Source: Macrostomum lignano
Taxonomy: Eukaryota
Assembly (NCBI GenBank): GCA_002269645.1
Contig: NIVC01001677.1
Span: 186,001 to 250,000 of the forward strand
Direction of reading: 5' to 3'
DNA length: 64,000 bases
Made by a program: the position numbers and the translations under genes. The notes under the pieces are model-generated. The model did not search any database and was not told where the DNA came from. It was given only the letters and a program-made list of their open reading frames with translations. Below are positions 15,405 through 54,594 of this stretch, piece by piece; position 1 is the first letter of the stretch; each line of letters starts with the position of its first letter.

Positions 15405-18400
15405 ATTCTCTCCCCTCTCTCCCCTCTCCTTTCTCCCCTATCTCCTCCCGTCCTCTCCAGGTGCCCCCTGTGTCAATCTCATTTTGTAATCTCATTCTGT
15501 AAATGAGTGTAAAACCGCACATTTTTTGCGCATTTTTCCTCGCGATACTTCATTCACATTGGACGCATTCTCAGTTTCAGAGTGGCGCACAGCACATAGT
15601 GAGTTTTACGATACTCTTAGAATTTTCAACAAGTTAGCTTATCCGCAAAACAGCTTTATTTACCATTTTATTGACCAAAAAGAGACGAGAAAGTTCTCCT
15701 TTATAATTCTCTCTTCCTGTGTCCTCAAGGCATGGTTCGATAAGCTGGCCAACTCGAATTGAATCTTCGTCTGTGTTTACCTGGCCAGCATCCGACCCAT
15801 TAGTCACCTGCGCTCATTAAGAGAATTCTAATTTTCTTGTTCTTCCGCTTTTCAGTTGCTTAGCGGTGCAGTATAACTGAAACTGAGAGCTGAGATAAGC
15901 AGCTTGCAAAACAGCGATGCTGAAACACTGGTATCGGGTTTCTTTTAGGAGTCACGGCAGAGAGAGACACAGCCAGGCCATTTCTGTTACGGGGTCAATG
16001 GAATTCGGCTCTTAAATAGCTTTTTAGCCTTGTAGTTCCCTACCTGCAAAGATGGGGAAAAGGATGGTGAAGATGAGGTAATGATGAAGAATAGGGAGAA
16101 AAATGGGGGGAGGATGAGGAGGAGGATGAGGAGTATTGGGGAGGAGAATGGGGAAGATGTGGGAAGGATGAAAAATAGAGAGGAGGATGGGAGGAGGATG
16201 GGAAGGAGGATGGAGAGGAAGATAGGGAGAAGGATGAGGAGAAGGATGGGGATGAAGATGGGAATGAGGATGGGAAGGAGGATGGAGAGGAAGATAGGGA
16301 GAAGGGTGAGGAGAAGGATGGGGATGAAGATGGGAAGGAGGATGGGGAGGAGGATGGGGAGGAGGATGGGGAGGAGGATGGGGAGGAGGATGGGGAGGAG
16401 GATGGGGATGAAGGTGGGAATGAGGATGGGAAGGAGGATGGGGAGGAGGATGGGGAGGAAGATGGGGAGGAGGATGGGGAGGAGGATAGGGAGGAGGATA
16501 GGGAGGAGGATAGGGAGGAGGATGGGGAGAGGATGGGGATGAAGATGGGAATGAGGATGGGGAGGAAGATGGGAATGAGGATGGGAAGGAGGATGGGGAG
16601 GAGGATGGGAAGGAAGATGGGGAGGAGGATGGGGACAATGGGGAGGAGAGTCAAGTATAAATTAAGCAAGGAAGCAGATAAGAAATCAAACAGGGAAGCA
16701 GAGCGGGAATGAGCCAGAAAATCAGACATCTTGAACACCGTCGCTCCCCAGGGCTTCGTCGGTGTCCTGGGCTTGCACGCGGCCATGTTCTACTGGGACC
16801 AGTGCTTCCTGACCGACTTCGCCTCGGCGACCATCGAGGACGCGGCGCTGGCCGCCCTGTTCCTACTGCGCGACCGGTTCATGTCCGCCCAGGACTACCC
16901 GCAGATGAAGTCGGTCTTTCTCAACGGGCCGCGCGAGATTTATACGGCCGATTTCATCCGGGCCTGGTGCCACCTGCAGGATCGCGGCGATCCCAGCCTG
17001 GTGCCGGAAATGAACCGGCGCAAGCTGGAGGAGCCGCCGCCGCCGGACCCGGAAGTCGGCTCCCCGACGCCCGTGCCGGCAACGCCGCTGCAGCCGATTC
17101 CGCTGCCGGGACTCTGGATCGACTTGGTGTCGCTGAAGCTGCAGCTGATGAAGGACGGGGCTAGACAGGTACTTACTGGGCTGGTTGCTGTGAGGAATCT
17201 CATTTTCGATACATATCGGTAGTCTACCAGCATACAATGGTTGCTAAAACAAAACTACGATACATATCGGTATAGATAGATAGATAGATAGATAGATAAG
17301 TCTACCAGCATACAATTGTTGCTAAAACAAAACTACGATACATATCGGTAGTCTACCAGCATACAATTGTTGTTAAAAAAACTTCGATACATATAGGTAG
17401 TCTACCAGCATGTAATTGTTGCTAAAACAAAACTTCGATACATATCGGTAGTCTAACAACATGCAATTGTTGCTAAAAAAAGCTTCGATACATATCGGTA
17501 GTCTAACAACAACATGCAATTGTTGCTAAAACAAAGCTTCGATACATATCGGTAGTCTAACAACATGCAATTGTTGCTAAAACAAAGCTTCGATACATAT
17601 CGGTAGTCTACCAGAATACAATTGTTGCTAAAACAAATTTTCGATATCGGTATGCTCCACTTGCAAAAGCGGTCCCACTGATAAAATCAATGTGCATGTA
17701 GGTAAAAACCGTCCTTTGAAGTTTACCGCTCTTTTCTCAACTTCATTTTTTGTATGAGAAATAATTTAATAGTCGATTACACCTGCCCCAACTGGGCCAG
17801 ATGTGCAATCGACAGCTCAGCCGCAGCTATTGCGCGGCGCATCTGAAGGATGCGTACGGCTGTTTGGACGCCACACACCCTCAATTATCCCAGCTAATGC
17901 TGGCACCCATTTTACAGCTGGGTGAACTGAAGCAATGCAGAGTTAAGTGTCTCTTGCTTAAGGACACAAATTGTTCCAGTGGGATCGGGAATCGAACCCC
18001 CGACCTTCAAGTCGTGAGTCCGACGCTCTAGCCACTAGGCTACAACCTCCTTGTATGAAAAAGACAATGAAAGAAATGAATAAATTGGTGTCCTTGAGTT
18101 AGTTTAGTTTAACAATAAATATTATTATTAGAGCAGTTTTATTAAAACTTATTCGATTTAGTTTCAAAGTTTATTAGCGGCGTTTGTAGTTTTTCCCACA
18201 TTCAATTATATCCAATCCATTAGAGTTGATAACAGAACAGCAAATGAAATAATTGGTCTGCACTTGACACAAAAATTTTTACCAAGGTTTACGATAAAAA
18301 GTGTGTACTTTTTTCTGAAGATCGAAAAATTAAGGTTTTTCTAATTTTTTAAAGAAAAGTGTTCTTTCCTAAAGCAAATTCTTGGTTCCTGATTAGCCTC

Positions 18401-32288: not shown

Positions 32289-32869
32289 ACCGGGATCAAA
32301 GAAGATTGCAGGACATTTGCACTTTGAGTTTCACACTGATTTTAACATTTGTTATACTGATTCACTTCTCTTTACTTCTTTCTCGCGTCACAGGTCGTTT
32401 TTTAACACTTATAATGCACCTTTTTTATATCGCATAATTATTAATGTTTATTTCCAGTTATTTATTTCGATTTTAAATACTTGATATTTAAATACTTTTT
32501 TTAAATTACTATCCAGAATCTTCTGTGTATTTTCTGTCAAAATATTCAAAATAGAAAATAAAATAGAAAGCGTGTTGAATTTTCCGTAACATTTAAAGGT
32601 CTGAAACTTGTTAGGTGGTAAAAATATGGAATTTTTTCTTTTAAACATTATTTAATGAGCATTAGCTAGCACGAGAAATAAAAAAGTTTTCTCGTAATAT
32701 GAAATAATTTATATCGTTTGCAATAAGTACATTTGAGGTATGAAACAGAAAAAATGAACTAAATAATATTAATAATAAAAATCTTCATAACAATAAGAAA
32801 CTGAATAAAGCTAAAATTATGTACAATTGGAATAATTTTATGGTCCACGCGGTTGACAAAACCGTAGCG

Positions 32870-33290
32870 ACTGTGACCTTGAAAATCCGGGGTGATCATC
32901 AATCGTGACCTTGAGAATCTTGGGGATCCCCAATCGTGACCTTGAGAATCTGGGGGAGCTCGCCAATCGTGACCTTTAAGAACTATGTGTATCCCTAATC
33001 CTGACCTTGAGAATCTTGGGGATCCCCAATCGTGACCTTGAGAATCTGGGTGGAAAGATCACCAATTGTGACCTTAGAGAATCCCCAGGTCGTGACCTTA
33101 AGAATCTTGGGGATCCCCACTCGTGATTTTGAGAATCATTTGGATTCCCAATCGTGACCTTGAGAATCTGGGTGGAAAGATCGCCAATCGTGACCTTGAT
33201 AATCATGGATATCCCTAATCCTAACCTTAAGAATCTTGGGGATTCCCAATTGTGACCTTGAGAATCTGGAGGACCCCCAACCGCGGCCTT
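32870..33290. repeat. ~33-bp degenerate minisatellite aatcgtgaccttgagaatctgggggatcccc
   Basis: Lies between the convergent 3' ends of gene 1 and the mucin. Confidence 0.8.
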
Positions 33291-33390: not shown

Positions 33391-36300
33391 TCAAAGCGCA
33401 GCAGCAGCACCGCTTCGATTCCACCGCCACCCGTCGCCGCGAATTCTCGCATTCCTCGCCCGCATCCGAGCTCTGTGCCGCTGGATGCCTCCTTCAACTA
33501 CTCGATTCAAAGCGGCCAGCTGTGGATTCTTGACACTTCTTGGCGGCCCCCGTCTGGCCGTTGGCTGCCGGGGTCTGGCTGACCAGCGCAGCTGATTGGC
33601 GCCGGTTCCAGCTGCCGTCACCGACATTGGAACAGCAACAGCACCCGCGATCGCGACTGTGTCGTCTTCTACCGCGTCAGCGTCGTTAGCAACCGTTTCT
33701 ATAGCAACAGAGTTGACGACTGCTTCGGGCGATACAGTGGCGGTTGACTTCGAGTTGCACAGCAGAATTATGGGCCTGGCGATTGTGCACCAGCAAATGC
33801 AAGACAGCACGGTGGCTGACAGCAGTGCAAGGGAAGCTGCGGTAAGTGCTTGGACAAGCGATGGAGGGGAGCTTGGGACGCTGGCAGGGGAATTTTGCGG
33901 TTCTGATGTTGCCGGCTGGGCTGTTGCTTGTTGCTCCGTTGTTTGTATATTTGGTGTTGCTTTTGACTGTGTTTGCGATGTTTGTGAGGTTATTGGTTGT
34001 GACGTTGGCTGTACTGATGTGAGTTGCAATGCTGTTGAGTGTGCTGTTGTTGGTTGTGCTGTTGTTGGTTGTGCTGTTGTTGGTTGTGCTGTTGTTGGTT
34101 GTGCTGTTGTTGGTTGTGCTGTTGTTGGTTGCGATGTTGTTGGTTGCGATGTTGTTGGTTGTGCTGTTGTTGGTTGCGCTGTTGTTGGTTGCGATGTTGT
34201 TGGTTGTGCTGTTGTTGGTTGCGCTGTTGTTGGTTGCGATGTTGTTGGTTGTGCTGTTGTTGGTTGCGCTGTTGTTGGTTGCGCTGTTGTTGGTTGTGCT
34301 GTTGTTGGTTGTGCTGTTGTTGGTTGAGCTGTTGTTGGTTGTGCTGTTGTTGGTTGTGCTGTTGTTGGTTGCGCTGTTGTTGGTTGTGCTGTTGTTGGTT
34401 GTGCTGTTGTTGGTTGCGATGTTGTTGGTTGCGCTGTTGTTGGTTGCGCTGTTGTTGGTTGCGATGTTGTTGGTTGTGCTGTTGTTGGTTGTGCTGTTGT
34501 TGGTTGAGCTGTTGTTGGTTGTGCTGTTGTTGGTTGTGCTGTTGTTGGTTGCGCTGTTGTTGGTTGTGCTGTTGTTGGTTGTGCTGTTGTTGGTTGCGAT
34601 GTTGTTGGTTGCGCTGTTGTTGGTTGTGCTGTTGTTGGTTGCGCTGTTGTTGGTTGCGATGTTGTTGGTTGTGCTGTTGTTGGTTGCGCTGTTGTTGGTT
34701 GTGCTGTTGTTGGTTGTGCTGTTGTTGGTTGTGCTGTTGTTGGTTGTGCTGTTGTTGGTTGTGCTGTTGTTGGTTGTGCTGTTGTTGGTTGCGCTGTTGT
34801 TGGTTGTGCTGTTGTTGGTTGCGATGTTGTTGGTTGTGCTGTTGTTGGTTGCGATGTTGTTGGTTGTGATGTTGTTCGTTGTGATGTTGCAGGTTGTGAC
34901 GTTGTTGGTTGTGATGTCGCTGGTTGTGATGTTGTTGGTTGTGTTGCTGTTGGTTGTGATGTTGCTGGTTGTGATGTTGTTGGTTGTGTTGTTGTTGGTT
35001 GTGATGTTGTTGGTTGTGCTGTTGTTGGTTGTGCTGTTGTTGGTTGTGCTGTTGTTGGTTGTGCTGTTGTTGGTTGTGCTGTTGTTGGTTGTGCTGTTGT
35101 TGGTTGCGCTGTTGTTGGTTGTGCTGTTGTTGGTTGCGATGTTGTTGGTTGTGATGTTGTTCGTTGTGATGTTGCAGGTTGTGACGTTGTTGGTTGTGAT
35201 GTCGCTGGTTGTGATGTTGTTGGTTGTGTTGCTGTTGGTTGTGATGTTGCTGGTTGTGATGTTGTTGGTTGTGTTGTTGTTGGTTGTGATGTTGTTGGTT
35301 GTACTGTTGTTGGTTGTGATGTTGCTGGTTGTGTTGTTGCTGGTTGTGATGTTGGTTGTGATGCTGTTAGTTGCGCTGTTGTTGGTTGTGCTGTTGTTGG
35401 TTGTGATGTTGTTGGTTGTACTGCTGTTAGTTGTGATGTTGGTTGTGATGCTGTTAGTTGCGCTGTTGTTGGTTGTGCTGTTGTTGGTTGTGATGTTGTT
35501 GGTTGTACTGTTGTTGGTTGTGATGTTGCTGGTTGTGATGTTGGTTGTGATGCTGTTAGTTGCGCTGTTGTTGGTTGTGCTGTTGTTGGTTGTGATGTTG
35601 TTGGTTGTACTGTTGTTGGTTGTGTTGTTGCTGGTCGTGATGTTGGTTGGGATGTTGCTGGTTGTGATGTTGGTTGTGATGTTGTTAGTTGCGCTGTTGT
35701 TGGTTGCGGTGTTGTTGATTGTGCTGTTGTTGGTTGTGTTGTTGCTGGTTGTGATGTTGTTGGTTGTGCTGTTGTTGGTTTTGCTGTTGTTGGTTGTGAT
35801 GTTGTTGGTTGTGACGTTGTTTGTTGCGCTGTTGTTGGTTGTGATGTTGTTGGTTGTACTGTTGTTGGTTGTCTTGTTATTAATGTTTGCTTTGTTGTTG
35901 GTTGCATGGTTGGTAGTGTCGTCGATTGTTTTGTTGGTTGCATTGTTAACTGTTTGTCAGTTGTTCGCTGCGCTGTTGTTGCTATGAGTGTTATCGTTGC
36001 TCTTAATTGCTGCGTTATTGTATGTGGATCCGTTGTTCGTGACGTCGTTGATGAATCCGCTGATGCTCCTGATGTTGTTTTTAGATTTATCGTTGTTCCT
36101 GGCATTGTCAGTCGATTTGTTGTTACCCCTGTTGTTGTCAGTGGATGTGTTGCTGCCCTCGTTGTCGGTGGATCTGTTGTTGACCTCGTTGTTGTCAGTG
36201 GATCTGTTGTTGTCCTCGTTGTTGTCAGTGGATCTGTTGTTGTCCTTGTTGTTGCCAGTGGATCTGTTGTTGACCTCGTTGTTGTCAGTGGATTTGTTGT

Positions 36301-37658
36301 TGTCCTCGTTTCTGTCAGTGGATCTGTTGTTGTCCTTGTTGTTGCCAGTGGATCTGTTGTTGTCCTTGTTGTTGCCAGTGGATCTGTTGATGTCCTTGTT
36401 GTTGCCAGTGGATCTGTTGTTGACCTTGTTGTTGACAGTGGATCTGTTGTTGTCCTCGTTGTTGTCAGTGGATCTGTTGTTGTCCTCGTTGTTGACAGTG
36501 GATCTGTTGTTGTCCTCGTTGTTGTCAGTGGATCTGTTGTTGTCCTTGTTGTTGCCAGTGGATCTGTTGTTGTCCTTGTTGTTGCCAGTGGATCTGTTGT
36601 TGTCCTTGTTGTTGCCAGTGGATCTGTTGTTGACCTTGTTGTTGACAGTGGATCTGTTGTTGTCCTCGTTGTTGTCAGTGGATTTGTTGTTGTCCTCGTT
36701 GTTGTCAGTGGATCTGTTGTTGTCCTTGTTGTTGTCAGTGGATATGTTGTTTCCCCCATTGTTGTTAGCCGATCTGTTGTTTCCCCCATTGTTGTTAGCC
36801 AATCTGTTGTTTCCCCCATTGTTGTTAGCCGATCTGTTGTTTCCCCCATTGTTGTTAGCCGATCTGTTGTTTCCCCCATTGTTGTTAGCCGATCTGTCGT
36901 TGCTCCTGATGTTGTTAGTGGAGCTGCAGTGACCAGCAAATGTGTAGTCGGCGGTACTCTTAATTGCGTTTCTGCTGCTAATTGAGACGTTGTACTAAGC
37001 GCAGTATTAGATGCTGTACTGGCTACTGCAATCGGCTCATCAGTAGTATCCTTTGCGCTGGTTACGACATCCGAAATAGTTGTGGAAAATAATCCTGGAG
37101 CGTTGACAGTCGCTGGATGCAAACCACTTTCAGTAGTTGTCGGGACAGCATTATCGCGTAGAGCAGTTGTCTGTTGGGCCGTGGTGATCTGCTCTAAAAT
37201 TATGTGGAAATAATTAATACAGATATTACAGTGATATTACAGCCTTTGGCGTTATCGTTCTTCAAACAGGCTGCAGCACGCACTCGTGCACACGCTCACA
37301 CGGGGTGCACAGTGGCCCTTAGTTTAATCTGTGCTCGTGGGTGCAATCGATGGGGTCCGTGGCGCGATAAATCATTTTTTGGGGTTTCGGCCATAGACAA
37401 TTTGGACTCAAAGAAAAGCGAGATCTACATTTCTTAACACAAAAAAGGAAATGACAGATGCCTAAAGGATAGATCAGATATTTTATGCAAAGTATAACAT
37501 ACTAACGGCATCATCACTAATTACAACTATTACTCACCTGTTGACCCGGCCTCGAGAGTAGCTGGCGCAGCTGTTGCACAGTTGAAATAGGCGGCAAAGA
37601 AAACAATGAAGCCTATAATTAGTGCATTATTAGCCACTGTTGTACCTACTAATTGCAT
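33391..37658 (-). CDS. Type I membrane mucin-like protein (~1307 aa); exons 37658-37538 and 37193-33391
   Basis: Exon 1 MQLVGTTVANNALIIGFIVFFAAYFNCATAAPATLEAGST (signal peptide), GTGAGT donor in phase 1; TTTTAG acceptor in frame with the 1243-aa ORF. It has 9-aa TTDPLTTTR repeats, 5-aa QPTTA/QPTTS repeats, a hydrophobic TM segment LVQALTAASLALLSATVLSCICWCTIA and an Arg-rich tail. Confidence 0.8.
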
Positions 37659-39481: not shown

Positions 39482-41259
39482 TTACTTTTTACCAGGCGGC
39501 TGCTGCGGCTGGGAGGCGGCGCTCATAGCCGACCAGAGGCTGGTGGGATTAAATCCCATATTTTGTCGCATAGCCTGCTGCAGCATAGTCAAATAGTTAG
39601 CCGGCATAGTGTAGGGATAAGAGCTGGCGCTGGCACCTCCGGCAGCCGGGTACAGCTGGGATATGGCCTGCAGCTGGGCGTGCAGGAACTGCTGGCGTTG
39701 AATCTGTTCAACAGCGGCTGCGGTGGCGGCAGCCTGAGAAGCGGCGGCGGCAGCGGCGGCCTGCTGCTGTTGCTGCTGCTGAGTGGTGGCAGCAAGGCGG
39801 CTGGCACTGGAGCCGGAGAGGCTGTGCAACGAACTGGATGACCTGTGCGCAGAGCTTAGCGAAGACATGCCATGCAGAGAATGATGCTGCTGCTGGTGAT
39901 GATGCTGCTGCTGATGCTGCTGAGCCTGAGGCTGAGGCGGCGGCGGAAGCAGATGCGGAAAAGCTTGAGCAGCCAGCTGCGGATTAGCCGAATAGCGTTT
40001 GAATTCTTTTTCAATTTCTTCCTCCTGTTTGAGCGCTTTAACAAAAGCGGCCTTGAGCCTGGCCGTGTGATCCTTGCGAATGGCGTTCTTCTGATTGACG
40101 GACACGCACTGTTCGCAGATGACATTCTTAGAGCCGGGCTTGTCCCGCTTCCACACAGGTGTATAGTCTGTGCCGCACTGCACACAGGTGAACGGGTGGA
40201 ATACGTACTTGACTTCTGTTGGCTTGCCGCCCTTCAGTACGGCATCGTATTCGCTGATATTGCGGACAACTTCCTCTAGGCCTACTAAAGCAATGAACTC
40301 GTTAGTAACCGTGCTCGGTATGAAGTTCAACTCAGACGGCGGCGGCTGGGGATTGGGAATCTCCAGCAGGGATTTCTCCAACTGTTTGCGCAACGCCAGC
40401 TTCTTCTGAGCCTTCTGGGCGTCTAGCTGAGCCTGGCTAATCTGTGGCGGCGGCGGCGGCGTAGCTTTCGTAGTGGAAGCCTGGCCGCTGCTGACGCTGG
40501 CCGACGTTTTCATTGGCAGCGCGGCGGCCGACTGCGACCGGCCAATTGCCGAAGATGGCGACTGATGATGCGACAGCTTCTGGCTGCCGACAGCCACTGC
40601 GCCAGCTGAACGGCCTTGAGCTGCAGCTGAGGCGCCCGACCGACTGGCACCAGATTGAGTGGCTCCAGCGACGGCGCCATTCTCCTTCTGTTGCTGATGA
40701 TGGAGACTGGAGCCGGGCGCCGAGGCGGATCTCTGCTGAGAATGGCGCATAGCCTTCAATAGGGCCAGTTTGCACTCTTCGCTACGCAGACTTTCGCGTA
40801 GTTTACGCAGCACCACGGCCTGCTCCTTCACCAGGGCCATGGCGGCGTCTGAATCAATGTCAGATTCGGCTAGCTCAGCCTGCTTAGCAACTAGCTTCTG
40901 GATTTCCTGCTCTTCATCGTCTGGCAGCACAATGATCTCATCGCTGCCAGCAGTTGCAGCGCTAGCAGCAGCGGGGGCAGAAGCAGCAAGGCTGCCAGTT
41001 CCACCAGAACTTGTCAGGGCGGGCGCTTTCTTTCGGCTAAGATCCATGGGCGCCAAGCCGCCTTGAGAAGAAGACTCAGTAGAGTTAGACGAAGCAGCAG
41101 CAGCAGCAGCAGCAGCCGCTTTCGAACGTTTCAACAGCACATCGGAGGTCTCGGGCAGTAGCCGTTTCCGTTGTTGCTGAGCAGCGGGCTGCATTGCCTT
41201 AATAGTTTTAGCTGTTGCTACTAATGCTGATTCTGTTGAACACTTCTTGATTGGCGACA
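39482..41259 (-). CDS. GATAD2: Transcriptional repressor p66 (GATA zinc finger domain-containing 2; NuRD subunit), main coding exon
   Basis: CR1 coiled coil LRKLRESLRSEECKLALLKAMRHSQ; CR2 KLALRKQLEKSLLEIPNPQPPPSELNFIPS..NEFIALVGLEEVV; GATA-type finger CVQCGTDYTPVW...ICEQC; RLKAAFVKALKQEEEIEK. A phase-1 TTTCAG acceptor precedes 41259, so an upstream exon is expected. Confidence 0.93.
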
Positions 41260-41450
41260 CTGAAATGTTGAATTAGTCAGATAACACGGGCGCTAATTAC
41301 AGGGAAATAATTAAATTCTGGCCATAGACAATTAGACTCTGTGCATATAGTACATAGAACTGCTAGCAATACAAAATAAATGAATTTTAATAAGCAAACT
41401 TTTGACAGTCTAAGAACCTGAATAGGGCCTTTCATTGCTTACTTAAACTA

Positions 41451-41851
41451 TTGGTTTTGTCAGCCTAACTGAGAACAAAGCCATCCAAAGTGAGAATCCT
41501 GCCCACGCTGACTGCGAAGGGCCCGGCTGCGTGCAGCCTTAGTCTATGGGCCATAGACAATAAAGGACAAGCAAAGTGATAAAAAGCCATCCAATGTGAG
41601 AATCGATTGGTCTTTTAAAACTTTGCTTGTCCTTTATAGTCTATGGCTCATAGACTAGGCTGGACGCAGCTAGGCCCTTCGTATTCAGCGTAGGCAGGAT
41701 TCTCACATTGGATGGCTTTTTATCACTTTGCTTGTCCTTTATAGTCTATGGCCCATAGACTAAGGCTGCGCGCAGCCAGGCCCTTCGCAGTCAGCGTAGG
41801 CAGGATTCTCACTTTGGATGGCTTTATTCTCAGTTAGGCTGACAAAACAAA
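41451..41851. mobile_element. Fold-back/MITE-like element with ~150-bp inverted arms and TA flanks
   Basis: 41451-~41605 is the near-exact reverse complement of ~41697-41851; the spacer holds a partial copy of the arm unit. Confidence 0.75.
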
Positions 41852-42049
41852 TACTAGCGTCATGAACAAGATTGTGATGTTCGTCGCTGCGTGCGCTTTG
41901 CATTTTTATCCATCCAAATATCTGCGTATTTATCCTACTATATACTCATAGCCTATTAGTTTTTATATCTTATCTGTTGTATAAATTTATCCACCTTTTA
42001 CCTACTCTATAATCTATATACTATTAGATCTATATATTAATCTGTCAAT

Positions 42050-42728
<679 letters not shown>

Positions 42729-42835: not shown

Positions 42836-43162
42836 TTACAATGATTTCGATTTACCAATCTCGCTAACCAAATCATTGTACTCTTTTAGACGCAGATGCC
42901 CATTGCCGATTTTATCCGGACTAGTCCAGGAGAACAGCCAAGGCGCATAGTCCACGTGATTCGGATCGTTAACCGGGGCCCCGGTTAAAAAGTGACAATC
43001 GCACACCCGCGAATTCGGATTGGGCTGCCACGGCTCGCCGCGGCGCAGCGCCACTATCCATTTCTGTCGCCTGGCCGGCGGTCCAACCGGTATGCGAAAC
43101 ATTTTCGGCATACCGGCACCGCCGCCCCTGCGTTTACAGTTGACTACGCAACAGCTGGGCAT
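42836..43162 (-). CDS. THAP zinc-finger domain ORF (108 aa if unspliced; candidate first exon of p66 via a donor at 42855)
   Basis: MPSCCVVNC...MFRIP...RRQKWIVALRR..WQP..NSRVCDCHF..G...DPNHVDYAPWLF carries the C2CH ligands and the conserved P, W, F, P of THAP domains. Confidence 0.85.
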   Translation of the reverse strand: MPSCCVVNCKRRGGGAGMPKMFRIPVGPPARRQKWIVALRRGEPWQPNPNSRVCDCHFLTGAPVNDPNHVDYAPWLFSWTSPDKIGNGHLRLKEYNDLVSEIGKSKSL

Positions 43163-43860
43163 GCCGCGGGAATATTGTATTGAGACCACAGAGCACCCTG
43201 GCTGCGACAGGTAGCCCAGGTTGAAATAATGGAGGCACGGGGCCAGATCATGATGGAGAGGAGAGAAGTAAAGAGGGGGGGGGCAGACAGTCACACTAAG
43301 GGAAGAAGAGGGAAGAGACAAGCCATCTACCATCCCATAGGCGTCCGTCCGGTTTTTTTCAAAGCTAAAATTTCTCGTCCCTCTGCATCCAAGGTGAGTC
43401 TGACACTGCTTCTGCCAGCGAGCCTGTCTACTCGGTGAGCACACGCGATGAAGCCTCCCTCCCCTTCTCACCTTCCCCAGGTCTGCTCTCCCCTCCTTCC
43501 CCGGCTCAAACCCACATATCCTGCCCAATTTCTCTGTATCCTCTGGCTCAATCTCTTGCCTGCCTATCACCTGTGTCCCGGCTCCAATTGATTTTTTGCA
43601 AACCGTAGACCACCTACCTCACTTTCTAGCCAGATCTTCTCAGGACTAGCAATAGGGGAAGAGTACAGACAGGAAAAAATACTAAAATCCTCTTTCCTAT
43701 TTTTCACTGTCAATGCCAAAACAGGAGGAATAGGAAAGGACAGGGATAGCTTTTAAAGTTATACAAAGCCCCAGCAAGAGACATCTGGATTCTGAACAAA
43801 ACAAAGAAACGACTGGGATTCTTCAGTGGAAGCTTTTAGAAAACTCCCTACCATGCTTGG

Positions 43861-44016
43861 GCGCAACCTATGGATTCACCCGGCCGTTTCTATTGGCAAC
43901 ACACACATGTAAGTTGCTATTGGACGGAATAGTAGTCACGTGACTGCTCTCAGCCAATAGCGACTTACATGTGCGTGTTGCCATTAGAAACGGCCGGGTG
44001 ATTCCCAAGGTTGCGC
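43861..44016. mobile_element. 156-bp palindromic (hairpin) element centred on agtcacgtgact
   Basis: 63-bp arms gcgcaacc...gctattgg / ccaatagc...ggttgcgc with few mismatches. Confidence 0.7.
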
Positions 44017-45477
44017 ATGTATGCAGTCCCTACTTACAGAAAACAAACTGAAACTGGCAAGACGGACTATTCTTGGGGTAGTAATTGCTAACATTATTCA
44101 CTGGATGCGGGCTTAACAGTAAATGATGATATTAACACAACCACAATGAGGTGAAGGAAAGACATGAAGGAAAGACAGACTAGACAAGAGTATGACAAAA
44201 TCCAACCCTTCCACCCTATCCTTTTATAAAGTAATTGAAGAGAAAGTAGAAATAGTTTAAACGATTGTTAGTAGAAACCAGAAAAATTGTTAGTAGAAAA
44301 GAACTCATTTAAGCTACTGAGCTTAAGCTACTAATCGTCTTCCAATTTGACGCAAACAATCTTCAACTATTTTAAGACAATCGTTTAAAATTTCGAGGCT
44401 TAAAGTTAATTCTGAACGGCACTGTGTACTTTTAAAGTCTGATTTTGTCAGCGTAGCAACCACCTCAACCTCCGCCTCTCTCTCCTTGCCTTATTTGGCG
44501 AGATATGGAAAAGGGGTTTTAAAATTGACTAAACTTTGGCGCTGCTATAAGTTTGCTTCACATAAATGATTGACTTCAAACTTGACAAAATTCTTCATTG
44601 ACTCATTCACTGTCATGTCTCTAAATGTAAAGTATCAGCTCTGTAACTCTGTTTTTTGCCTAGATGTTTTTGCCGCTCATTCATTTCCCCCAGAGGAAGG
44701 GGTCGGGCGATAGGACTCAGTGAACATAGATGTGCTGTGTTGTGGAATAACTTTAGTTATATAGCCTTCTTTGCAAGAGACTATTTTAAGCAATGACAGT
44801 TTAGTGGGAAATTCCAAACACTTGGCCCATTCTATAAAGCCACCATAAAATAAGATTGTTCTTAGCTCCTATCTCCACAGTGTAAAAGTTCCAATGTAAA
44901 ATTAAACTTATGCTACAACAGCATTATAGTAAAACCCCTCTGTCCTACTATCTGATTGAGAGATAGAGTATTCTGTGCCACAAACTGGCTTTCCAAGCAA
45001 CTTGAGCTCCCACTATAGGATCTGCACTGCTGAAACAACCATCTTAACAAGCATTATCCTGATACTCTATTTTTAATTTTCACAACATTGTAATCATCAA
45101 TCATATGAACTTGTAAATGATGTCAGCACACAAAGACTTGGGGACATGGCTTTTAAGGTTGCAAATATACTTGAAGACATGGCAAATTATAACAGTCAAT
45201 ACTTAATACTAAGTGGCATTGCATTCCTTATATCTTTAACTTGGACATAATTGTATAAAAATGTGCATCTTAAAGAGTATCTTGAAAGACACTGTAAACT
45301 TTTAAATTTAGTGTATTTTTGCCATTGAGACAACCACTGTAATCTCCATCTACCTCTTTTTCCCTTATCTGGCCAGATATATACACAAGGGTTTTAAAAT
45401 TGACTAACTTATGGCTACCATAACATGCATGCACAACACCCCACTAAGCTAGCCAATCTAGCTGGCTGGCAAAGAGC

Positions 45478-47560
45478 CTAGCCAAGGTAAGTTGCATAAA
45501 TGCCCATTCAAAAATTATAGTCATGATACTAATTAGATGATAAGGCAGGCATTTAGCCTTAATAATACAGTTAGTTACTCTTGTCATTTACTCAAATTAG
45601 CATAATTTTTGCTTAGGTATCTTTCATAGGTAATTTGCATTTTTGGTCAAAATGTAAGATGCATAGCTAGTATATAACTCAGAGGGAGTGCTCATGTATC
45701 TGTAAGTTTATTCCATATAAAACAATTAGCCTTAAACTTGATATAATTCTTTATTAACTTATTATCTATCTAAGTATAAAATCTTACTCTAATTTAATTA
45801 AAATTAGGCGCACAATTGGTTACAAGAAAAAGAGCACAAATGGGCAATCACTCTAATCAGGAGGTGGCAAATTGTACAAATATATTATAAAATGTAAATT
45901 TATAAAGCACACAAGATGCCCATATTGTGGATTGTGTTATATATATGCCAGAAAGTATCTGACTATCTAGTAAAGTGCACGCCAATAAAGTATGCCAATT
46001 AAGATAGTCTTCTAATTCTAGTAAATTGTATGCCAATTAAAAATGTGTGATTAACAAGCAAAAAATCTAACAATCAAGCTTAGGCATAGCAAATAATTTA
46101 CAATAAAAAATTAAATTGAAAACATATATCATTTGAAAAAATGAAAAGAATTGGTAAAACAGAATAGTTACATTTATTATTGATTAAGGTATATTTCTGA
46201 AAGAAAGAAAGAAAAAAACTTTCTATAGTTTTCTTTCTTCTTTCTTTCTATAGTTTTCAAACAATATACTAAAACTATAGAAAGTTTTAGTATATTGTTT
46301 GAAAATCTAATTTATTGTCATGACTTTGCAAATTAACTCTATAGCAAAGATTGTTTAGCATAATTCATATAATTCAATGCTTTTGTACACTGCATCAAAA
46401 GCTTGAACAAGTATAGTTAAGAATTATAAGCTAATGATTGTGCTTGAAGGTTGTATTTCCTCCTTCAATGCCAAATAAATGCTAGATAAAGCACTTGAAC
46501 GCCAGATGTATGCTAGCTAAAGTGTTTGTATGCCAGAATTTTCTGGTATATACTATACTTTCTGCAATATGGTAAAGATGCTAATGCAGGGGCATAAGTG
46601 CCCATTGCTATTATACATCTACATACTTACACTGACATTATACGCATAAGATGCATAGCGCATGCTGCGTATATACCATGCACCTTATGCGCAAATAGAA
46701 ATTTCTTTCTCTGTAGCCATGCAGGCAATTTTTCACAAGCATACCAGATACTATTTGTAAAAAACCCTATTTGCTCCAATGGGAATCTTAGTCAACCTAG
46801 TAGAAAAGACTATAATCTACTTTAGTAAGACACTAGTAATAGCTATAATTGTGGTAACAAACTAGATTCATAACTATTAATTTAATAATAAATACATCAA
46901 ATACTTTATTGCCAAAAATAGTTCCATTTTCTAAATAAATATAATTTGTTTAAACTTTCATTTTGACTTTGTAAAAAAATAAACACACACTAGGTACATT
47001 TTTATTAAATATTGAAATAACTAATGAAAAATTAATTAGATTATATTATAATATCAAGTCACTAACTTAGAGATTCTAGTATATACAATTTTCAGTCATT
47101 ATAGATAATATTTGGAACATATATAGTTAGAAAATAAAATGGATTGATTAAAACACTTGAATAATTTCAATATCTTATAATATATAATATAGTTTTTACA
47201 TCAATCTAAATCTTTCAATATATAAAAGTATAGGCTTATCTTAATTTTTTTCTCTTTTTTAAAAAGTTTATTTGCTTTTTTAGAATATAATTCTATAAGC
47301 ATATACATGCGCAACTGCTGGCTGACCTGGCCAATCTGGCCATTGTAAATTGTGGTGGACCAGGGGAAAGTTGCAAAAATGCCCAGCCTAAATAATACAG
47401 ACATAGTACTAATTAGATAATGAGGCATTTAGCCTTTATAAGACAGTTATAGTTACTCCTGTCATTTACCTAAAATTGTATTAGGGTTTCTTTTACAGGT
47501 AAGTTGCATTTTTGGTCGCATGGCTAGTATAAATCAGGGGGTTGCGCATGTATGTATAAG
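45478..47560. mobile_element. Two diverged copies (~45478-45700 and ~47360-47560) of a small decayed element
   Basis: Shared aagttgca.aaatgccc...tactaattagat...gcatttagcctt...agttactc.tgtcattta...ttgcatttttggtc...gctagtata; internal inverted caaaaatgc/gcatttttg. Confidence 0.6.
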
Positions 47561-50500
47561 CATATTAATCATTATATGCAATTATTCTTATTTGTTACTA
47601 GTAGGCCCTATCTATTACTAAAGTAGCTAATATTACCACAATAGCTATTATTGGAATGGCTATTACTAAAACAAAATGGACTAGACCTATTAATTTATAG
47701 TAGAAAAGGCTTAGTTGGAATTTTTTAAATAAACTAAGCCTATCATAGGTTATCCAACTAATATTTTGGTCCATATCTATAATACAGATATGATGATTTT
47801 TGAAAAAAAAACAATATAGTTCTATTTTTAATTAACAAACATACATGCCTAACACTCATCTGTCTTGTCCAAACTAGACAGGTGAAATGGCTGCTGGCCA
47901 AGGTAAGTCACAAAATCAAAAACACAAAAATTTGAAGAAAGGAGAGGAAGAGAAAAGGAAAAGAAAGGAAGGAAAAGAGAGTGAGGATTGAGGAGAAAGA
48001 AGAGAGAGAAAGAGAAAAAGAAGAAAAAAGAAAAAAGCAAGAAAAGTCATATACAAAATGAAAATTAAGTCACAATTGGGGCGAACTAAATTGCAATTAA
48101 GAGGAACTGAGTTGCAAATCTGGACAAAACTAAGTTGCACCAGACAGGTGAAATTGGTATTGGACCAAGACCACTACATACCAAGACTGCTATACTTAGG
48201 GGAATCTAATGAAGAAATTTGGCTTAATGTTTTATTAGATAGAGCTAGAATTAAAAGGAGACAAATAGATAAGAGAGCCAATAAGACAAGGCTACAAAAA
48301 AGAAACTTATGAAAGGAATTGCAATGCTAGAAAATTGGTAATTCTATCTCAATACTATACCAAAAGCCAATAATAGCTGTGGCAGTCTTAGTATGTGGCA
48401 GTTTTAGTCATAGGCCTATGCCATAAAATTGTAAGGTTGGGCATGTATGTTAACAAAGAAAATTTGTTAGAAACTTTTGCTTAATATAACTTTGTATTGA
48501 TTTAATAGTGCAATTTATTTTTAATTAGTTTCTATTTGGTTTAATGATAAATAAGTAAGTCTATTACATCTGTCCTATTATATTACCTAGGCCTAGGCCT
48601 AATACTAGTAATAGAGGTTAGACAATATCATATAAGCCTATATTTATAAGATTTTTTAGTCTTAAGATCTATACTTTTAAAATAATAGAGATTCAATTAA
48701 TATTCAAGTTAAGTTTAATTGAGATCTAGCCATCTAATAAGCCTTCTTATATTATTCTATCTTATTTAGCTTAGTAGGCCCTACTAATAATAGATATTAT
48801 TATTTATTTATTAAATATATGCATAATGATAATAGGCCTAATAGAGGAAAAAACAATTAATACATAATATTAAGCTTGTTAGTAACTTGACATATATCAA
48901 ATATAAATAATATGATGAAATAATATTAATATTAATATCATCTCATCATAGTCAACATTAGTCACATCACATAGTCCTAGATTTTGAGATCTCAAAACCA
49001 AGATCAAGATTGAGAAAAGTGCCAAGATCTTGTCTTAACAATTGAGATCAAGATTGAGATCTGGTTTAACCCCTACTGACTAGTTCCCAGTGAGCTCCGC
49101 GAAGCGCGTGTCCTTGGGTTTGTGGGGTGAGCGGAGCGAACGCGCGAGGCACAAAGTGCCGAGCATGAGGAACAAACAGCCAGCCAATGCGCGAAGCGCA
49201 TTGGGTGGTCTGGCTTGTGACGAATATAATAATATGAGACGTGTGCATCGAAAAAATGACAAGAAAAATCTCACAAAAACTGCTGTAACTTCAAAACTAC
49301 AAGTGCGAATTTCACAAGTGAGGTGTCATTTTAAAGAGAAGAATCTGATCTATTTAACGAGTATAGTTTTGTATGGATTCACTGCGGAGAAAAGGAACAG
49401 GCTTCAGTTGAAATGTTTGTCTTAAGATTATGTCTTTACAAAAGTGCATTTCCTCATGCACATTAAAACTCGAGCTAAAAATGTTCGAGGGTTATAGGTG
49501 CGCCTTACTAAGATGCATAACATTATTGGGTTGTTTTTTTCAATTGTATCAAAAAGTTGGCACTTTGGTTGCAAAAAATGCAAAAATTGAAAATGTACTT
49601 TTACATTTTTTTGCATTTTTTTCTATACTGCTAATAGTTAAGCATACATACTATGCACCAATTGATGCGCAATTCAAAGATACACAAGTGTGGAAGTTTT
49701 CAATTCTTAGACATTTGAAATCAGAAAGTTATCGACGAAAGACTAAAAATCATGATCTCAAACTGATTTGAGGAAAAGTGCTCATTATAATTTTTGGAAT
49801 ATGGAAGAAACAATTCAACGCCGTCATCTAATTCCAAACTAACTGTACTTTAAGGTACTGCGATGATTTTTTTATTGAAAGAGCGAAACCTGTTTAAATA
49901 TTTGAAAAAATGGAAAAAAAGTACCTTTTTTTCATAGAAATACACTCTTTTGACTGCTTAATCCGATTTCCAACAACAAAATAGTTGCTTTCCTGCTGGT
50001 GCAAACCGTTATTAGGGTGAATTTTCAAAATTGCATACTGTGCCAAAAGTAAACTGAAGCTTAATATTTATAAACATTAGAAACGGGACCACTAATGGGT
50101 ATTTTACTTTGGTTACTTACTATGGACTAAACTGGCACTGGCAGAGACAGATTTGAGAGAAACTAATTGCTCCATTGTATTTGTATTTGGCTCCAGCGTT
50201 ACAAATTACAATAGCTATTTCGGGGTCTAACCGGCTAAGTTATCAAAAAAGCTAGATACCAATCACCAGTTTCATCATCAGCTATACCTACCACGATTTT
50301 ATAGTCACATGCAACAGTAATACCCTCCTTTAAAAGTTTTCAATATCTAAAATGATGTGTTAAATTTTATAAAATTTCATAAACAGTGAAATTTTAGCTG
50401 TTTACGTGCTGGTGGTTTGAACGTAGCTACTTTGTGCGAAAATACACTGTCATTAATACCGTACCTATTATTGTATTTATTGTATTGAAAGTTGATGTGT

Positions 50501-53500
50501 AAATTGTACTTTTCTATTTTTTTGTCATTCGTTATCGCACTCGGGCCGGCCTGCCTGCCTTGTGGGGTGTGGTGGCCTTGGCCACTTTCTCCCCCTTCTG
50601 CTAGGATCCAAAGCAAGCTTTCAAGTGTACATTTAATATTATCGATCGATTATTTAAAACAAGCCTCTAGTGGCTGGTGTTGAGAGTGAGTGGCCTTGAG
50701 TGTACGCGAAAGCAAGAGGAAGCCCATGGGCGGACTATATGAACCTTCCTTTAGTGGAAAGTTGGGCCTTGTGCATTGGATAGTGTACGCTACACAAGAC
50801 AGAAGGTAAAGAGAAAGAGAATGACAGGCTAGCCAATAGCGATAGCATGTGCTTCTTTCTCTCCAGTCCACTATGGTAGGGGGGGGAGGGGGGTGTCAGA
50901 CGGCCCAACTCTAACCCCCATACCCAAAACAGCGTACATGTAGAATAAGAAGGGATTGGGTCCAGATAAGTCTTCCCAAATGTACATGTATGTACAAAGA
51001 CAAACACAGACAAGAAAAATGGCTCTAAAAACCATTGTTATTGTTACACTGTGTGTCTATTTTTATTAACTTGACTTTGACTTGTCTTTACTCTAGCATG
51101 GTCAAGGATAATTACTGTTACTTCATACCTAATTTACAATTAATTGCATAAGATTAAGAAGGAATAATACAATCGAGGTCGAACCCATGATCACTTGACC
51201 CACCCACCCATGATCACTTCTGATTCTGACCTACATGTATCTACTATATCCTGCCAGTTTCTCCAGTTTTATGGGTCTTGGTGTCGGTGATTCGAGCAAT
51301 TCCATTACATTTTATCGGTGCAGTGCGTCTATTAATGCTTAGCTACTTGTATATGTGTTGCAGAACTTATGCTCGTAGTTTCCCTTCTAGGGATGTTGAC
51401 CCCGGGAGTGCTCCCCGGGGAGCTTGTCGGGGAATACTCTCCGGGGAATTTAACCGGGGTCCCCGATAAGATAATTCCCTGGGGAATCGACATCCCTAAT
51501 TCCCTTCCTATAAATCATTTGACGTTAGAGACATTTTACAACTCTCGCCCTACTTTATCTATTAGGCTAACTTTATGTATGACACGACGCAAAATATTAG
51601 GAGCATCAGCGTTAATAATGCCTTGAAAGTCTTTAAATAATCGATACAACACTAGGTATTATAAAATTCCAACCCCAAAGCTCACTGGGGCGAAAAGACT
51701 TTGTCTTCATTAACTAGTCTGGGTTTACCCACCAGATTGATAGTCAGACTGTGCTAGAGACAAATCTTTCAAGCCATACCATTCTGCGCAAATTTTAATT
51801 AGATTTCTAAGAAAATAAGTAAAATTTTAAAATGTGCAACAGTAAAAGATCGCTATTTTTGTTACTACTACTACTGGGCCTACTCATCTCAAGCTTAACT
51901 CAAATAAGTAATATGCTAGACTCGTTAGGACTCTACGACTACATGGTACAATTTTAAGCCACGTCTTATTGGGTCAGCCCCCCTAGCCACATCTAAAAAA
52001 GATAGGCCTAAGCAGACAAATTTTCAAAACACGACTCTATTGAAGGCGGATATTGAAGATTTTCTATAAGAAACAACTTTGCTGCATCTAGTCGTAGTTA
52101 CAGAAGCGATCAAAATCCATCTAAAATGTAATCTAGACTCTAGACTAAATTCAAGATCTAAACAAGACGAAAAGTACAAAATCAAGTCCTAGACTAGGTC
52201 AAGGTGTCAAACAGACAAAACTAACTTCACATGACAGTGTTGAATATAGACCTACTGGTACTTTTTTGTGCCTCGCTTTTGTCAATAGGTGATATCTACT
52301 TTTAGCTGAGGTAGGTGTAAGATGATATACCAAAACTAATTAATATAATTTCATAACTAATACACGTTTTAAAATTATGCTGAAATACTTTTGTTCAAAT
52401 AAAAGCATGAATGCTGGGTAAAACAAAGTAGAAACTTTTCTTTAAAGGTAATTTGTGATGCATATTGTTTTTTGTTTTGTTTCTTTTTTTAAAACATTAA
52501 TTATTAAAGCAGTTGCATTTTATTAAAAACGAAAAAATAAACATTTTCACATTTGTATTAGCATCATGGAACTTTTAATCGTTTAAAATCAAGGCACTTT
52601 TACGATTTTATCGAAAATCAATTCTTAATCTTAGCTTAGCTAATTACTATCTGACTAAATTACAAGGAAAAAACCTACATATTTTTAAAAAAATTCTTGT
52701 ATGGTTAATTCTATATGTATGTTTAAAAGCTTATTTCATTTACATGCACCACAGTAGCTAGTGACTAGTGTTGTCAGTTGTCTACAACATAAACGACTAC
52801 CCGTCCCTGGGCTGTTGCTGCTGTATGGTGTTCTGTACCCAGAATGGTTTTATAAAAAAACCACTTGACACAGCTTCAATGTGTTTTACTTGCTCGTAAC
52901 TAGACCTAATTTGATATGATAGGCCTGTAGGCTAGGCTATGAGTATGTATGTCATCAATTAATATAACTTTAAACTTTTTAATCATTTATTAGGTGCACT
53001 TTGTATTTATTATACAATTTAGTCTAAGTATGGTTTTATGTTATGTTTTTTAATTAATAATTAGTATATTACTTTTTTATTCATATTATAAGCTATAATT
53101 ATCTTATAATTTAATACTTATACTTATAGACCTATTTGTATTAATTTAATTTTTAAAATGACTATAGCTAAATAGAGAACAAGAGTGAGAATGCAAGAGC
53201 TAATGCTCAAACCAAGGTATAAAAACCCTTAGCAAGTAGAAGAGGAGGGCTATTGTAAACAAAAGAATAGAAAGAATATAATGCACATTCCCCACAAATA
53301 CCATTTATTTACAAAAGTGCAAAAGTATACCCTCTAGTAGAGCCTCGTAGGGTAACTAAAGCTTGTTTGCAAATTGGTCATTGGTGCGCCTTAATGCAAA
53401 CTGAGGCATCTATAGCTTTTTTCTAAGAATAAGAACATTGAAAAATATAATTAAAAATACCAATTATGTATGCATCTTAGACAAAACTTAAGGTTTAGAT

Positions 53501-53914
53501 TGAAATGAATACAATATATTATTGAATAACTAAAGAGTGATTATAGGAAGTATTTTACTTTTACTTTATTAAAACAACTTTTTTCCATTTTTCTTTTTCT
53601 AGAATATATAAGTAATTTAGTTTAGGGGTTTTTATAATTTATTTTTTTGATTTAGATGATAAATCATTAGGGGCAAAAAGACAAAAAGTTTATGTCTATA
53701 TTTTAGAAAAAAATATCTTAATTGTATTTTTATAGGACTCTAATTATAGGTTTTCTAGAAAGAAAAAGCTAACCCCTTCTTTTTTCTTTATAAGTAAAAA
53801 ATAAACTTTTTTATTTTTAAAGTATATAGTATAATATATCAAAGAAATTATCTAATCAGTTTATTGATACAAAAACAAAGCAATAATTTAATAAAGATTA
53901 AAGAAGAAGATTGA

Positions 53915-54150
53915 AGGTTGAATTCCCAATTCTATTAGAACAATTTATGTCCTTGAGCAAGACATTTCACAATACTTTATTCTACATTGCTTTAGTTCAC
54001 CTAACTATAAAATGTGTACCAACATTAGCTAGGATAATTGAGGATATATGGGCACCCTATAGTCCCTAGACTAAACAGCCATATGCAGCCTTCCTATGCA
54101 CTACTCAATAACTATAGCTAAACTATTAATTGCATATCTGGCCTAATTAC
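53915..54150 (+). mobile_element. CORE-type SINE copy B, heavily C>T/G>A mutated
   Basis: Ungapped alignment to copy A: 53980-54051 vs 17942-17871 and 54071-54148 vs 17867-17790. Confidence 0.8.
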
Positions 54151-54594
54151 ATATCCACTTGTAAAAGCAGAGTTGATTAAGCACAAGCATAGCTTATTGT
54201 AAATCTTAAATAATAATCAATAAGGATTAATTTAATAGCAAGAAATCATCTATGCATGATTGAACTTGATGCTTCCTTTTTCTTATCTGCTACATGCTTG
54301 TCTCATATGCTAAGGATAAAATGCTTAATAAGTCTATCTAAACTGACAGCCATAGGCCATGCACCTGTCAAGTAATTGAAGAAATTATTATTATATATGA
54401 ATTTTCAAGCAAGCCACCTCACCTCGCTGTATTGGCCCAATTTGATGAAATACTGTGCTTAAATCTTGAACGTGGAACTTGTAGTGTGAGAAACCCGTCA
54501 CCTGCACACTTGGCACTCCCCCCATACTCACCCTCCCTTACTGGCATTATCGAATCTCTTTAAATCGGCGCCCACTCTGCTAAAACCAGCTGCA

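Follow-up and report, generated by a model that had tools for sequence, protein, structure and literature searches.

The genes recognized within the window, the whole 64,000-nt stretch of Macrostomum lignano DNA analysed here, include a p66/GATAD2-like open reading frame, a THAP-domain ORF, an adenylate-cyclase-9-like gene and a C-type lectin ORF. The closest relatives of the p66-like protein, about 43% identical, are found in nemerteans, annelids, brachiopods and molluscs; for an adenylate cyclase exon the best identity is 74%, without taxonomic resolution. Judging from the p66 relatives, the DNA is probably that of a spiralian; exact look-ups of two proteins encoded in the window matched no record. 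Just downstream of the start region of the p66 gene lies a 400-nt inverted repeat or palindrome (41449-41853), which contains two 106-nt units. A 1243-aa open frame on the minus strand (33391-37122), rich in Thr, Pro and Gln, features 15-nt and 30-nt tandem repeats and a non-repetitive N-terminal part, and looks like a mucin. Minisatellites are exceptionally dense, with 75 TRF rows of periods between 12 and 64 nt over positions 1-64000, and many of these arrays yield long spurious ORFs; two long tetranucleotide arrays are also present, one of (TCTA)n (1878-2914), the other of (ATCT)n (42028-42728).

Between the THAP-domain gene and the adenylate-cyclase-9-like gene lies an 11-kb intergenic region, with two CpG-free blocks, L and R, and a SINE copy, SINE B, located within block R. 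The ORFs of this region resemble nothing recognisable. Coordinates of the relevant features, including those of a second SINE copy, SINE A, and of repeats found in and near block L, are reported in Table 1.

Table 1. Position and main properties of the genes, SINE copies, CpG-free blocks and other repeats considered in the text
Feature	Position	Strand	Properties
SINE copy A	17762..18050	-	full length, 289 nt; ends set by target-site duplication
tRNA-like head of SINE A	17980..18049	-	A-box and B-box (GGTTCGATTCC); Rfam RF00005
SINE A 5' target-site duplication (TTTTTCATACAA)	18051..18062	-	direct sequence reading
SINE A 3' target-site duplication (TTTCTCATACAA)	17750..17761	-	11/12 positions identical to the 5' copy
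p66/GATAD2-like ORF	39482-41260	-	apparently intronless; P66_CC coiled coil (MBD2 interaction) and GATA zinc finger
THAP-domain ORF	42836-43570	-	
Repeat X1	44359..44642	+	fringe of block L; keeps 7 CpGs
Block L	44750..49060		GC 29.7%, rho(CpG) 0.12
Repeat X2	45232..45790 (45232-45423 and 45700-45790)	+	inside block L; no CpG
MITE M1	45424-45699		splits repeat X2
MITE copy M2	47300..47560	+	inside block L; CpGs intact in both terminal inverted repeats
Segment between blocks	49060..52950		3.9 kb; GC 37%, rho(CpG) 0.70
Block R	52950..54420		holds SINE B; GC 26.6%, rho(CpG) 0.08, rho(TpA) 1.03, rho(CpA/TpG) 0.97, rho(CpC) 1.29
SINE copy B	53906..54148	+	5'-truncated, 35% GC, CpG-free
Adenylate-cyclase-9-like gene exons	from 54595	+	

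SINE A is inserted between 12-nt target-site duplications. Over its first 70 nt, this copy matches positions 1-71 of the 71 in the Rfam tRNA model, with a score (24.6 bits, E=0.007) lower than the gathering score of 29, and the B box is canonical; neither ARAGORN nor Rfam at gathering thresholds returned a match within the window. The central stretch of this copy (CCTTAAGCAAGA...CTTCAGTTCACCCAGCTGTAAAATGGG) resembles the MIR/CORE core, the likeness being to the MIR sequence …CTCAGTTTCCTCATCTGTAAAATGGG…. In the SINE B region no match to the Rfam tRNA model was found. SINE B starts within the tRNA-derived head and is thus 5'-truncated; the family it belongs to is a tRNA-derived, putatively CORE-type SINE. 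For its insertion, a single, uncertain target-site duplication candidate could be pointed out, in low-complexity AT-rich DNA.

The original prediction, that SINE B is a copy hypermutated in one direction by a process similar to fungal repeat-induced point mutation (RIP), was based on a 150-nt comparison. Both copies were found where it had placed them, and their alignment was seen to reach further 5', into the tRNA-derived head. A neutral-scoring local alignment of A (18008-17790, minus strand) with B (53906-54148, plus strand) covers 219 nt, 168 of which identical, and counts, in the A to B direction, 14 C>T, 28 G>A, one A>G, no T>C and 8 transversions; a transition-tolerant alignment, with the same coordinates, features 43 forward transitions, 2 reverse ones and 7 transversions. 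The one-way excess reported over 150 nt is consistent with these figures, 42-43 forward against 1-2 reverse transitions. Changes affect 46 of the 116 G/C positions versus 4 of the 103 A/T positions: about 37% of the G/C positions of SINE B were lost via C>T or G>A, and about 4% of the A/T positions were altered. Since A/T positions are almost unchanged, SINE B is young by ordinary divergence, and heavily decayed at cytosines. The GC content of the aligned part drops from 53% in A to 35% in B, and all 11 CpGs of A are lost.

Several features identify A as the ancestral-like copy. A tRNA-like head is recognized in A, without a match in the B region; the B box is present in A, where B has GGTTGAATTCC; eleven CpGs could not plausibly have been made by point changes; and at positions where the two copies differ, A agrees with the MIR core. 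The head and the CpGs, along with the 12-nt target-site duplication of A, uphold the A-to-B polarity originally assigned, although SINE A is a single-copy proxy for the ancestor and not a family consensus. Of the two "reverse" transitions, the one where A has CCTTAAGC, B has CCTTGAGC and MIR has CCTTGGGC more likely reflects a G>A change in the lineage of A itself.

The changes are not evenly distributed among cytosine contexts. CpG sites are the most affected, with 13 out of 22 changed (59%; 45% for sense-strand C and 73% for sense-strand G), followed by CpA (17/38, 45%; 33% and 58%, respectively), CpT (8/27, 30%; 15% and 43%) and CpC (5/29, 17%; 7% and 27%). The order CpG > CpA > CpT > CpC is identical on both strands; the difference among CpA, CpT and CpC, taken alone, has a p value of 0.055. 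The earlier statement that the changes lie mostly outside CpG is thus true by raw count, as 30 of the 43 forward transitions, corresponding to 32% of the non-CpG G/C sites, are of this kind, but does not hold per available site. The preceding base also matters: a 5' A is favoured (15/23, 65%) and a 5' G disfavoured (10/40, 25%), with T (38%) and C (31%) in between. In a logistic model, p values are 0.01 for the 5' base, 0.003 for the 3' base and 0.005 for the strand, all three of which contribute.

As to the strand effect, G>A is in excess when read along the sense strand of the SINE: 29 of 60 G sites are changed versus 14 of 56 C sites (Fisher p=0.012; with context corrected for, LRT p=0.005), and in each context the frequency of G>A is twice that of C>T. 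Sense-strand C>T changes are nonetheless substantial: 9 of the 14 are non-CpG, corresponding to about 20% of the available sites, versus 2% for reverse transitions. The two types of change are interleaved along SINE B (runs test p=0.45), so that no strand-coordinated clusters are present. The GC skew of SINE B is -0.19, versus +0.08 in its left flank.

In order to obtain a substitution baseline from the window itself, the variants of 24 of its minisatellite arrays were polarised against each array consensus, and each variant was counted once. The resulting ratio of GC>AT to AT>GC transitions per site is 2.2 and transitions to transversions are 148:124 (1.2), figures which may understate the raw AT bias, the baseline being imperfect because of gene conversion in minisatellites. 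Events per 1000 site-opportunities are 11.9 for CpA, 18.2 for CpC, 20.0 for CpG and 14.2 for CpT, with no CpA preference. Compared to this baseline, both the one-way character of SINE B transitions (43 out of 45, p=3.7e-5) and their ratio to transversions (45:7, p=1e-5) are in excess, and the ordinary substitution spectrum of the window does not account for them; the few changes at A/T sites (2-4) entail a wide confidence interval, at the lower end of which the rate ratio is about 5. The equilibrium GC content implied by the SINE B spectrum is about 7-8%, versus a local value of 23-30%; SINE B is therefore not simply relaxing to local composition.

The flanks of SINE B are also CpG-free, with a GC content of 23-31%, and CpG depletion extends over the two blocks, where rho(CpG) is 0.08-0.12, versus 0.7-1.5 in nearby DNA. 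The right edge of block L is abrupt, the number of CpGs per 200 nt changing from 0 to 13 at 49060; the segment that follows, up to block R, was either inserted later or protected. Elsewhere in the window, AT-rich non-coding DNA (20300-22000, 32150-32870 and 1200-1870) has rho(CpG) values of 1.2-1.5, indicating that low GC alone does not accompany CpG loss in this genome. Within the blocks TpA is about 1.03, versus 0.8-0.9 elsewhere, and CpC/GpG and GpC are raised; contrary to what is expected from pure CpG decay, CpA/TpG is not. When the context rates of SINE B were applied in silico to the normal 3.9-kb segment, GC, CpG, CpA, CpT, CpC, TpA and GpA shifted as observed in the blocks, while GpC and ApC did not shift in the observed directions.

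Two repeat families have several copies each in block L. X1 and X2, a pair independent of the SINE, are paralogues, and going from the former to the latter 35 C>T or G>A changes are found, along with 13 reverse transitions and 28 transversions; in the first 187-nt segment alone, the proportion is 22 versus 7 (binomial p=0.008). These changes are mostly non-CpG and strand-symmetric (20 C>T and 15 G>A). The X1/X2 pair supports a net loss of G/C inside block L, not specific to the SINE. The regional character of the signature, part of the original prediction, is thus borne out by the sharp edges of a CpG-free block, by a second block 4 kb away and by this pair. Transitions between the MITEs M1 and M2 are instead symmetric (22 versus 19; 41 transitions and 38 transversions overall). 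As M2 keeps its CpGs, and the M1/M2 differences are symmetric and about half of them transversions, not every resident of the block has been hypermutated. Both pairs of old neighbours are rich in transversions, which are almost absent from SINE B.

M1 and M2 belong to a MITE-like family characterized by a common terminal sequence, GGTTGCGCATGTATG, recognized at 43850-44027, 45424-45699, 47300-47560 and 48435-48449. The first of these elements, M0, is a near-perfect palindrome with 63-nt arms, 90% complementary, found immediately upstream of the THAP gene; the last one is a lone MITE end, at 48435. The use of M0, palindromic and of normal GC content, as a reference for M1 and M2 was ruled out, as only the 15-nt termini are in common.

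No third SINE copy was found within the window. A BLAST search of the whole window for further hypermutated repeat pairs, in a collapsed purine/pyrimidine alphabet, detected, beyond low-complexity arrays, only the A/B and M1/M2 pairs. In metagenome contigs, neither a transition-degenerate 37-mer nor a conserved 25-mer from the SINE had a match, and viral contigs also gave 0 matches; the 86-aa open frame running through the SINE, used as a protein query, produced no candidate, and no SINE copy was found in the region of the closest retrievable p66 homologue. The family was not found in the collections searched, and with no more copies retrieved the case for hypermutation is that of one locus and one SINE pair.

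Taken as a whole, the SINE B evidence points to local cytosine deamination, and does not show RIP of the fungal type. The explanation that we favour, with a probability of roughly 0.4, is that cytosines were deaminated in the double-stranded DNA of a short, sharply bounded, repeat-bearing intergenic domain, locally and densely methylated in the germline, either at present or formerly. In such a domain CpGs would be completely erased, and cytosines in CpA, then CpT, then CpC would be deaminated at decreasing rates; the interleaved hits on both strands would correspond to many independent events. Complete CpG erasure is an established outcome of 5-methylcytosine deamination, and CpG>CpA>CpT>CpC is the order of preference of DNMT3-type methylation. 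Methylation, including that of non-CpG cytosines, would be the cause, and the process would presumably operate in the germline and over the whole domain. Because the blocks retain a GC content of 26-30%, well over the equilibrium value derived from SINE B, it would have to be recent or episodic. The 2:1 excess of G>A and the skew of SINE B, not shared by its left flank, argue against a symmetric double-strand process, and dense non-CpG methylation is not known to be a general feature of invertebrate germlines. The p66/GATAD2 homologue found in the window may be a faint hint that the organism reads DNA methylation.

Deamination of a methylated domain has many traits in common with the methylation decay of transposons: SINE B lost every CpG, the blocks have a rho(CpG) of about 0.1 next to undepleted DNA, and the changes are found on both strands, interleaved. 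In animals, however, such decay is described for CpG only, while 70% of the SINE B changes are outside CpG and follow a CpA>CpT>CpC gradient; the non-CpG part therefore needs either non-CpG methylation or another deamination route. In plants, methylation-driven decay affects all cytosine contexts. The original prediction had stated that nothing comparable is described in animals, too strong a claim given that transposon-targeted CpG methylation is documented in invertebrates (PMC8857917) and that active AID/APOBEC-like mutators have been described in a brachiopod and in sea urchin (PMC5956068).

One alternative to domain deamination is ordinary decay combined with a poor reference: SINE B could be an older copy, or one from an AT-richer subfamily, ordinarily relaxing to an AT-rich region, its decay being exaggerated by comparison to a young, CpG-rich A. 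The use of two copies only, without a consensus, leaves room for this, as do the low GC content of the flanks, the wide interval on A/T-site changes and the possible distortion of the minisatellite baseline by gene conversion. Under the window's own spectrum, however, neither the directionality nor the scarcity of transversions is expected, as the p values given above indicate. Old residents of the block did accumulate transversions, the implied equilibrium is well below local composition, and other AT-rich non-coding DNA of the window is not depleted in CpG. We consider this explanation rather doubtful, but it keeps a real share of probability because the whole case is built on one pair of copies.

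Another alternative, the main mechanistic rival of domain deamination although we judge it unlikely, is that the mutations were introduced at retrotransposition by an AID/APOBEC-like single-strand deaminase, acting on first-strand cDNA to give G>A and, to a lesser extent, on SINE RNA or the second strand to give C>T. SINE B would then have been mutated by the time it was inserted, and its later CpG loss, like the AT-rich and CpG-free nature of the flanks, would be unrelated and ordinary for the target region. The preference of LINE-type endonucleases for AT-rich targets would explain the location of SINE B, and GpC, the least edited 5' context here, is disfavoured by many AID/APOBEC enzymes. 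The near absence of changes at A/T positions fits a burst of editing, and the prevalence of G>A in every context, which survives context correction, is in favour of it too, as is a GC skew absent from the left flank. The original prediction had set deaminase editing aside on account of the strand bias of APOBEC enzymes, a dismissal which was too quick, as a 2:1 strand bias specific to SINE B is indeed found. SINE B also resembles, in its dense deamination-type load with almost no other divergence, the products of cDNA editing by vertebrate APOBEC3/APOBEC1, and enzymes of this class are known in invertebrates (PMC5956068, PMC5889660), including the active brachiopod and sea urchin mutators.

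Against editing, the sense-strand C>T changes, most of which non-CpG, occur far above the level of reverse transitions and form no strand-coordinated runs together with G>A. The favoured 5' base is A, and not T or C as for APOBEC3-type enzymes, and the 3' gradient is led by G. The loss of CpGs is shared by the flanks, and X2 loses G/C even though it is not a retroelement copy. Moreover, a survey of LTR elements in 19 invertebrate genomes found no such editing (PMC4866542). A mixture of the two processes, domain deamination and editing at retrotransposition, is possible.

A true RIP-like process, triggered by homology, in which a RID-like enzyme deaminates recognised repeats as in filamentous fungi, appears very improbable. 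As in fungal RIP, changes are almost only one-way C:G>T:A transitions on both strands, and the DNA they yield is rich in AT, enriched in TpA and sharply bordered; CpA, the second most affected context, is favoured, TpA rises, and block L hosts copies of two repeat families. The label of "RIP-like" nevertheless fits poorly: the top context is CpG and not CpA, no sign was seen that repetition acts as a trigger, M2, a repeat within block L, keeps the CpGs of its terminal repeats, and the host is an animal. Classical RIP-index thresholds are passed by the 52-54 kb intervals (TpA/ApT 1.16, (CpA+TpG)/(ApC+GpT) 1.01), but also by the unmutated DNA at 50-52 kb (about 1.1 and 1.0-1.08) and, marginally, by that at 21-22 kb; the substrate index of block L is 1.27-1.48. 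The check by RIP indices, originally proposed, thus does not tell hypermutated AT-rich DNA of the window from AT-rich DNA left unaffected. No RID/Masc1-type cytosine methyltransferase gene was found within the window, and literature searches found no report of RIP outside fungi, including any RIP-like process in animals. Copy A is untouched, with its 53% GC and 11 CpGs, whereas the RIPCAL paper describes RIP as mutating both copies (PMC2621366).

An artefact of assembly or consensus in an AT-rich, hard-to-sequence stretch is hardly credible, as the changes are directional and context-dependent, the indels of SINE B are clean, and the sharp edges of the blocks coincide with real sequence features.

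That transposons are inactivated by mutation via cytosine deamination is accepted in animals as far as CpG is concerned, in plants for every context and in fungi for repeated DNA. What sets the present case apart is the sizeable share of non-CpG changes, found on both strands in a kilobase-sized block of an animal genome. A more general version may also be proposed, in which a germline process of a spiralian animal converts C to T in a domain-restricted manner, in all contexts (CpG>CpA>CpT>CpC, with a favoured 5' A) and on both strands of kilobase-sized, repeat-bearing intergenic blocks, rapidly inactivating new mobile elements; we hold this generalisation to be decidedly unlikely. If true, such a kilobase-scale process would represent a new mode of genome defence, or a new local mutational regime, in animals, and a functional analogue of RIP or of the all-context methylation decay of plants. 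Estimates of repeat age would be affected in genomes of this kind, since a young copy can appear 25% diverged. The single locus described here is best regarded as a lead for a genome-wide test, and not as a demonstrated system.

Some further features of the blocks and of related DNA were observed. At 49060-49200, a CpG-rich stretch sets in right where the CpG-free block ends, carrying the palindromic CCAAT motif CCAATGCGCGAAGCGCATTGG and, after it, TATAATAATAT; its appearance is that of a promoter or of one end of an inserted element. Within block L, an A-rich polypurine tract of 35% GC (47934-48046) shares its purine/pyrimidine pattern with G-rich GA minisatellites, of 55% GC, found elsewhere in the window, and could be a GA minisatellite decayed by G>A changes. 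The region of the closest retrievable p66 homologue (ENA ERZ22147071, L001 1-21713, within a 3.7-Mb contig) has a low CpG o/e (0.07-0.6) nearly throughout, unlike the mosaic seen in the window.
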